From Sminthopsis crassicaudata (lineage: Eukaryota), in contig NC_133620.1 in NCBI RefSeq assembly GCF_048593235.1, positions 216,444,852 through 216,508,851 on the forward strand: DNA of 64,000 bases, read 5' to 3'. The notes beneath the pieces were generated by a model. It made no database searches. It worked only from the letters and a program-made list of their open reading frames with translations, and was not told the origin of the DNA. Shown here piece after piece: positions 7,398 through 11,420 of this stretch (the stretch's first letter is position 1; each line of letters opens with the position of its first letter). The position numbers and the translations under genes are program-made.

Positions 7398-7591
7398 GTT
7401 ATAAAAGCAATTGAAGAAGGTTATCGTTTGCCAGCACCCATGGACTGCCCAGCTGGTCTCCATCAGCTAATGCTGGATTGTTGGCAGAAGGATCGTGCTG
7501 AAAGGCCAAAGTTTGAACAGATAGTTGGAATTCTGGATAAAATGATCAGAAACCCAAATAGCTTGAAAACACCCCTGGGAACCTGTAGCAG
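7398..7591 (+). CDS. EPHA7: EPHA7 exon: end of tyrosine kinase domain (194 bp)
   Basis: ctattag|GTT...AGCAG|gtaagt. Translates [64 protein letters not shown](R), the EphA7 kinase C-lobe. Confidence 0.98.
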
Positions 7592-8142
7592 GTAAGTGCC
7601 AATTTCTATCAGGGATAAGAATTTGACATGTTGGAAAATTTTTGCACAGGATAAATTCAAGCTTTCTTAGAAAAGTGAATTATACTTGCAACATGAATGC
7701 TAGTTTAAATATAGTAATCTTTCCCCAAATATTCTTATTTGATATCTTGTTTAAATATGTTAAGCCTAACTACTAGTTTTAGTTTCCATTAACCAACTCC
7801 CCCCCATGAGAAGTTGCCATCTATGCCACATATTATCCATTCTTAGAAGGTGTGTCTTAAAAGACATTTTTCTTCTAGCTTTTTGTGACAAAGTAATATC
7901 CTGTTTAAATAATCATTTTTTTTAACCTATAATTTTATTTCTATCGCTCTAAATTTGTTTTTTAATTTTTCTTGAGGTAATTGTGCAGAGAACACATTTA
8001 TAAATGACAATACAATAAAGTAAGAAAGAGGAATATCTATTTAGTAAAAAGAATCATGACACTTAATTCATTTTCATGAGTAGTTTTCCTGGATAGTAAC
8101 ATAGGAGTTGTTATTTAGCCCCCAGCTGCCTTGTAATCCTGG

Positions 8143-8323
8143 TATTCCTTGGTTGTTATTGGTAGTAAGTTAGACCCTTCTAAAGGTGTATTAACTCATG
8201 CAGCCCACAAGGGTGCCATTACTACGGTGGAAGAGTAATTTACTAAATAGTCCCCTTGTGGCCTGAACAAGTTAGTGTAGCGCCAAATGTGCTTAATTTA
8301 CTAGCAGTTACTTCCAGAGAAGA
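8143..8323. repeat. Long degenerate inverted repeat (arms 8143-8220 / 8246-8323)
   Basis: Hand count: 50 of 78 positions Watson-Crick complementary with no gaps about a single symmetry axis (~8233). Confidence 0.85.
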
Positions 8324-8381
8324 AGCTGAGCAAATATTTACTGAATATAAATAGTGCAGTCTGTACTTAAACACATACACT

Positions 8382-8414
<33 letters not shown>
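8382..8414. repeat. (CG)3(CA)n microsatellite
   Basis: cgcgcgcacacacac... read directly. Confidence 0.95.
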
Positions 8415-8630: not shown

Positions 8631-8786
8631 GCCAATTAGTCCTCTTCTGGATCAGAATACTCCTGACTTCACTACCTTCTGTTCTGTGGGAGAATGGTTA
8701 CAAGCAATCAAGATGGAAAGATATAAGGATAATTTCACAGCAGCCGGCTACAACTCTCTTGAATCAGTGGCCAGAATGACTATTGA
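8631..8786 (+). CDS. EPHA7: EPHA7 exon: linker and N-terminal half of SAM domain (156 bp)
   Basis: ttttaactag|G...ATTGA|gtaagt, phase 2 at both ends. Translates (R)PISPLLDQNTPDFTTFCSVGEWLQAIKMERYKDNFTAAGYNSLESVARMTI(E). Confidence 0.98.
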
Positions 8787-11305: not shown

Positions 11306-11420
11306 GGATGTGATGAGTTTAGGGATCACATTGGTTGGTCATCAAAAGAAAATCATGAGCAGCATTCAGACTATGAGAGCACAAATGCTACATTTACATG
11401 GCACTGGCATCCAAGTGTGA
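11306..11420 (+). CDS. EPHA7: EPHA7 terminal coding exon: SAM C-terminal half, PDZ-binding motif, stop
   Basis: ctttctcttccccag|G GAT GTG...CAA GTG TGA (stop 11418-11420). Translates (E)[37 protein letters not shown]. Confidence 0.98.

Follow-up and report, generated by a model that had tools for sequence, protein, structure and literature searches.

A worn palindrome in a conserved intronic island of EPHA7 in Sminthopsis crassicaudata is most likely a molecular fossil

The intron that separates the kinase and SAM domains of EPHA7 in the marsupial Sminthopsis crassicaudata carries an imperfect palindrome that is most likely a molecular fossil. Our preferred reading, to which we give a probability of about 0.62, is that it is what remains of an eroded inverted repeat that arose before marsupials and placentals separated and is decaying in a weakly constrained intronic element of the gene. 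This reading is carried by the statistical strength of the symmetry in the window (the whole stretch of 64,000 nt that was analyzed), by the weaker symmetry in the same register that orthologous contigs retain, and by the failure of these contigs to preserve a common fold.

The palindrome and its setting in EPHA7

The palindrome lies in an intron of 1,039 nt, between the last kinase exon and the first SAM exon. With the SAM exon used alone as query, the best solved-structure match of its ORF was the SAM domain of EphA7 (3h8m, E=5e-26), ahead of EphA4, and SAM_1/SAM_2 domains are found in 19 ORF fragments that cover this exon. The final coding exon of EPHA7 is found near 11306-11420. The features that concern us here are the following:

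7398 to 7591, plus strand: last kinase-domain exon of EPHA7, from frame translation, with donor GT at 7592 and 91% identity to L011/L012 133-327
7994 to 8379, no strand: conserved island of about 385 bp holding the palindrome, from blastn to L002, L008, L011 and L006, an nhmmer profile and sliding identity
8143 to 8220, no strand: left arm of the imperfect palindrome, with 50/78 Watson-Crick pairs and an orthologue identity of 41/74 to 51/76
8221 to 8245, no strand: spacer of 25 nt between the arms, with the symmetry centre at 8233
8246 to 8323, no strand: right arm of the imperfect palindrome, with an orthologue identity of 53-55/78
8631 to 8786, plus strand: first SAM-domain exon of EPHA7, 156 nt, with 3h8m as best solved-structure match

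Positions 8143-8220 pair with 8323-8246 (i with 16466-i), the arms showing no indel relative to each other. Our recount confirmed the 50 Watson-Crick pairs in 78 ungapped positions that the original prediction had reported; the other positions comprise 8 G:T, 8 A:C and 12 other mismatches. The three helices that had been singled out (8163-8172/8294-8303, 8189-8196/8270-8277 and 8201-8213/8253-8265) were all correct on re-reading, as were the equal numbers of G:T and A:C sites (7 and 7) in 8155-8220 and the placement of the palindrome some 310 nt upstream of the SAM exon, the right arm ending 307 nt before 8631. A 6-bp apical stem (ATTACT/AGTAAT at 8218-8223/8234-8239) does exist as described, though it overlaps the spacer and lies in a different register from the arms. 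The weaker outer matches claimed to extend to about 8111/8337 did not hold up, since pairing outside 8143/8323 is at chance level, and no flanking duplication or terminal repeats are evident there. Such marks of terminal repeats and target duplications may be erased after more than 160 Myr.

The symmetry is highly unusual for its surroundings. When the surrounding 3 kb were shuffled 200 times with dinucleotides preserved, the best ungapped palindrome of 78 nt had on average 39.1 pairs (sd 1.36, max 44), compared to the 50 observed. When all symmetry centres of the 64 kb were scanned, the only rivals, scoring 49-53, were (TA)n-type microsatellites near 19.3, 21.5 and 45.6 kb. A blastn comparison of the stretch with its reverse complement gave E=1e-7, and Smith-Waterman alignment to the self-complement gave z=7.4. 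One could still argue for a chance alignment, given the many centres open to a scanning reader. However, a z of about 8 against shuffles, uniqueness in 64 kb bar microsatellites, and enrichment of the same register in independent orthologues (see below) refute this explanation, whose probability we consider negligible. The competing microsatellite tracts, long runs of (TA)n, (TG)n and (GATA)n, occupy 19.2-19.35, 21.45-21.55 and 45.4-45.75 kb and are the only other places in the window where a palindrome scores at the top.

Neither blastn nor a profile of the orthologues recovered a second copy of the palindrome within the 64-kb window; the palindrome itself was counted by script, its 64% identity falling below the default floor of the repeat search. 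Searches of Rfam families at E<=10 returned sub-threshold matches only: miRNA models reached 16-20 bits where 84-94 would be needed, and SCARNA7 reached 26 bits over a (CA)n tract. Preceded by CGCGCG, this (CA)n microsatellite (8386-8414) directly borders the island on its right side and has no counterpart in the orthologous contigs; the SCARNA7 and mir-297 matches, both sub-threshold, arise from it.

Orthologous contigs and the conserved intronic island

Orthologues were reached through the stop-to-stop ORF over the SAM exon: a word search with this ORF yielded the 19 ORF fragments, from Logan, ENA and JGI contigs, and their DNA was then fetched. The contigs reaching far enough upstream were L001-L003, L008/L009, L006 and L011-L015, and L007 covers the right arm only; the comparison leaves out the placental-type clusters P0001, P0002, P0003 and P0008, which have ORFs over the same exon and one of which may be human. 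None of the contigs compared was judged to be human, L002 and L006 deriving from rare single-project runs. Contigs L011-L015 differ from each other by 1-3 bases in 400 and are probably ruminant host DNA, the sample label of L012, L014 and L015 (XIEF21-1) fitting the study of ruminant gut by Xie et al. 2021 (PMC8199421). In mutual alignments, the intron that follows the SAM exon is 62-66% identical among L001, L006 and L011. A MIR-like SINE fragment, orthologous and recognized by eye, is located downstream of the SAM exon in L001 (860-1090) and L006 (900-1130), in a region to which the downstream intron of Sminthopsis does not align. From the mutual alignability of their introns, the MIR-like element and the ruminant study label, we take the mammal-type contigs to be placental.

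Only part of the intron can be aligned between Sminthopsis and these contigs. Blastn matches to the island (contig, identity, columns, E value) were as follows:

L002: 68% identity over 328 columns, E 7e-39
L008: 65% identity over 384 columns, E 8e-33
L011: 61% identity over 388 columns, E 3e-24
L006: 59% identity over 300 columns, E 4e-6

The remaining kinase/SAM intron gave no alignment to the mammal-type contigs (35-45% identity, the level of forced alignment), and neither did the intron downstream of the SAM exon when Sminthopsis was compared to placental-type contigs. The island thus has the hallmark of a conserved non-coding element, being alignable across the split where neighbouring intron DNA is not. 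Since the palindrome sits inside an island that is conserved beyond the species and aligns to four mammal-type contigs, a young neutral MITE is refuted. Constraint on the island is nevertheless weak: among themselves, the placental-type contigs are 63-79% identical in the island and 62-73% identical in the flanking intron. The proposal that the element was exapted is only weakly borne out. Alignability to placental-type contigs, which the flanks lack, speaks for it, whereas a conservation barely above that of neighbouring intron among these contigs and the deletions they tolerate speak against it. Indels of 1, 2, 6, 7, 8, 14 and 23 nt separate the orthologues, a tolerance that excludes a coding role of the island; its ORFs are short and have no relatives.

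The reach of the island was explored further. Profile searches in three more distant vertebrate orthologous contigs found no match in L024/L025, which cover the whole intron (exon 75% identical), in L027, which covers 631 nt upstream, or in L010, which covers 567 nt upstream. The sole likely non-therian amniote contig, L005, ends 166 nt before the exon. Word searches for other species with the ORFs on the island returned nothing, and a metagenome scan with a marsupial-type island pattern gave 0 matches. A general degenerate pattern of the island matched a single contig (L022, 3186-4265), in which a bacterial-type ORF of 359 aa spans the match; we rejected this candidate as a chance match and not an orthologue.

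The ruminant-type contig shares 80% identity with the best-conserved block of the island (8298-8347). TTTACT-type motifs, which we take to be forkhead-like candidate sites, occur at 8239, 8297 and 8337, with a further copy in reverse orientation at 8043. The orthologues retain the copies at 8297 and 8337, which are direct and not inverted repeats, and the motif at 8239 is not conserved. These observations bear on the possibility that the symmetry reflects a function at the DNA level, with the island acting as an enhancer-like element whose binding sites would be arranged in mirrored orientation. An island that is conserved when its flanks are not, and a well-conserved block that carries candidate motifs, are what such an element would show. 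However, mirrored partners are not kept in orthologues, the one conserved motif pair is direct, the 8239 site is lost, and whole helix segments have been deleted in orthologues. We consider a mirrored element distinctly improbable.

Two further repeats were noted in the island. A perfect 12-nt inverted repeat (CTATTTAGTAAA / TTTACTAAATAG, at 8037-8048 and 8239-8250, 190 nt apart) connects the island's left portion with the spacer of the palindrome. In addition, a spacerless inverted repeat of 30+30 nt (8037-8096, 70% complementary and AT-rich) occupies the left part of the island and is probably due to chance.

Conservation of symmetry and fold

Among the species compared, strong symmetry was found only in Sminthopsis, with a self-complement z of 7.4 as opposed to 2.0 in L002, -0.6 in L008, 0.2 in L011 and -0.3 in L006. 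Even so, 34-46% of positions in the orthologues pair in the Sminthopsis register (46% in their majority consensus), compared to 24-27% in slid registers (z 1.7-3.9). This residual pairing indicates that part of the symmetry predates the marsupial/placental split, and it upholds the ancient origin proposed originally.

The sense strand of Sminthopsis is predicted to fold into a hairpin of about 180 nt (-57.8 kcal/mol, z -2.4 to -2.6) with 35 long-range pairs. This prediction, together with arms that lack mutual indels and discordant sites that favour complementary bases (described below), is what could be expected of a hairpin in the EPHA7 pre-mRNA that was selected in marsupials, for the timing of SAM-exon splicing or for ADAR, and lost in placentals. 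However, the z score is modest, the antisense strand (fold z -1.9) and the DNA fold almost as well as the sense strand, only 64% of positions are paired, and the strand-specific excess of G:U over A:C was not seen (8 vs 8). Furthermore, the structure is kept in no orthologue. The orthologous stretches fold with energies that match those of shuffles (z -1.6 to +1.2); in the right arm, the ruminant-type contig is missing 6 nt from the best helix and another 14 nt, and L006 is missing 23 nt. RNAalifold returned a consensus structure with 0 pairs, and the 7 compensatory pairs detected across five species are at the background level of slid registers (4.6±1.8, max 9).

The sequence comparison therefore indicates that the palindrome is not a conserved RNA structure. 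The 180-nt pre-mRNA hairpin that had been put forward is not supported as a conserved functional structure, with its lack of covariation, the empty consensus and the shuffle-like folds of orthologues, and we judge it very unlikely even as a hairpin selected in marsupials and lost in placentals. Conversely, the preference expressed at the outset for a decayed DNA palindrome over a strand-selected RNA stem is supported by the equality of G:T and A:C sites, the lack of covariation and of a consensus fold, and the orthologue deletions inside helices.

Direction and age of change

Cross-species arm complementarity is multiplicative (q_dd·q_ee 0.146 vs q_de·q_ed 0.155), which implies that species differ by one-sided and not by compensatory changes; the test excludes two-sided changes only and gives no polarity. 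At discordant sites where the partner base is shared, the Sminthopsis base is the complementary one by 20:7 when judged against the consensus, the other counts being 21:6, 27:7, 12:1 and 13:5. The majority consensus is to be preferred here, an ancestor built by the outgroup rule being biased toward Sminthopsis bases. Three of the differences are packed into an 11-nt stretch of the right outer helix (TTAATTTACTA vs TTCCTTTACTC), and all three raise the complementarity of Sminthopsis. The excess is partly a matter of ascertainment, as the element was picked for its symmetry in Sminthopsis. In this outgroup-free comparison involving one marsupial, it would fit a loss of pairs in placentals and a gain in marsupials equally well.

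A gain in marsupials could have come about by replication template switching, a mutational process in which a short segment of one arm is copied into the other, so that an imperfect inverted repeat comes closer to perfection (PMC5453318, PMC8794818). Under this explanation, most of the symmetry would have been created or restored along the marsupial (dasyurid) line by switching between arms, without selection. The excess of complementary Sminthopsis-specific bases (20:7 to 27:7) and the three clustered changes in the right outer helix agree with it. However, the clustered stretch is an imperfect copy of the other arm, with one mismatch left inside, the asymmetry is in part ascertainment, and the orthologues are already significantly symmetric in the same register. 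We find this explanation improbable when taken by itself. Template switching and lineage-specific selection taken jointly are a more serious contender, though still an unlikely one. The particular scenario in which marsupials kept or rebuilt the hairpin, by selection or by repeated template switching, to control SAM-exon splicing or to recruit ADAR while the placental copy decayed, is one to which we give very little credence.

Decay is favoured because the orthologues are already symmetric in register and because substitutions mostly break pairs: for random single substitutions, pair breaking is about 3.5 times commoner than pair making. Two points weigh on this account. The arms in Sminthopsis have kept the same length throughout, with no indel between them. 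Moreover, approximate divergence dates make the lineage that leads from the ancestor of therians to the dunnart longer than the one that leads to the ancestral placental, and pure decay thus needs an unusually strong constraint in marsupials or a burst of change on the placental stem. On the assumption that the arms were perfect at the start and that rates stayed constant, a comparison of arm complementarity between species (q≈0.39) with orthologue identity (q≈0.57) would place the origin of the palindrome very roughly 200-300 Myr ago, an estimate with wide error.

Evolutionary interpretation and relation to known systems

We propose that decay of an ancient inverted repeat proceeded as follows. 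The putative source is either an insertion of the fold-back or MITE-like kind or an inverted duplication made locally, and the starting state may have been a perfect inverted repeat. By the time marsupials and placentals separated, the repeat would have been in place and already imperfect. Each arm would then have changed on its own, accumulating single substitutions and, in placental-type lineages, deletions as well, with Sminthopsis retaining more of the original symmetry. The island of about 385 bp evolves at roughly one third of the neutral rate, a slowing that points to a weak role at the level of DNA or linear RNA, perhaps as an intronic regulatory or splicing-control sequence. The symmetry itself would do no work, and no selected hairpin would be involved.

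The palindrome is an already known kind of feature. Conserved non-coding elements derived from ancient repeats, such as the Eulor, UCON and MER classes of Repbase, have been reviewed (PMC5753468). Like these, the EPHA7 element is short, low-copy and non-coding, is kept across a deep mammalian split and resides in the intron of a developmental/neuronal gene, and its repeat-like palindromic interior suggests a putative mobile origin. Unlike the ultraconserved classes, it is weakly conserved (56-68% identity to placental-type contigs, with deletions), and while Eulor families reach fishes, the EPHA7 element was not found in the three more distant vertebrate contigs. It also differs in that the 64-kb window contains no further copy.

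With the template-switched quasi-palindromes described in PMC5453318 and PMC8794818 the element shares lineage-specific and partly clustered changes that would raise arm complementarity. However, the events described are short, recent and perfect copies, whereas the EPHA7 arms are 78 nt long and 64% paired.

Resemblance to RNA-based systems is also partial. The inner stem (8189-8277) faintly matches several miRNA models, on both strands, and in this recalls intronic pre-miRNA hairpins. All scores are however far below gathering thresholds, the apical region is too open (about 39 nt) for a pre-miRNA, and the stem is not conserved. Long intronic inverted-repeat dsRNA, for example that of inverted SINE pairs, is edited by ADAR, and an intronic sense-strand hairpin of about 80 bp, as predicted for EPHA7, is similar in kind. 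ADAR substrates are nevertheless much better paired and stem from young repeats, while the EPHA7 hairpin is 36% mismatched, with a fold z of about -2.5 that comes from a sequence-only prediction.

If our reading is correct, the intron of a neural guidance receptor gene would provide another weakly constrained element that carries an inverted-repeat fossil predating the separation of marsupials and placentals. Such a fossil would be useful for repeat annotation and would offer a dated example of palindrome decay without selection on pairing. If, on the other hand, the complement-favouring bases of the marsupial prove to be derived, the element would be a clean case of long-range palindrome reinforcement by template switching or selection.
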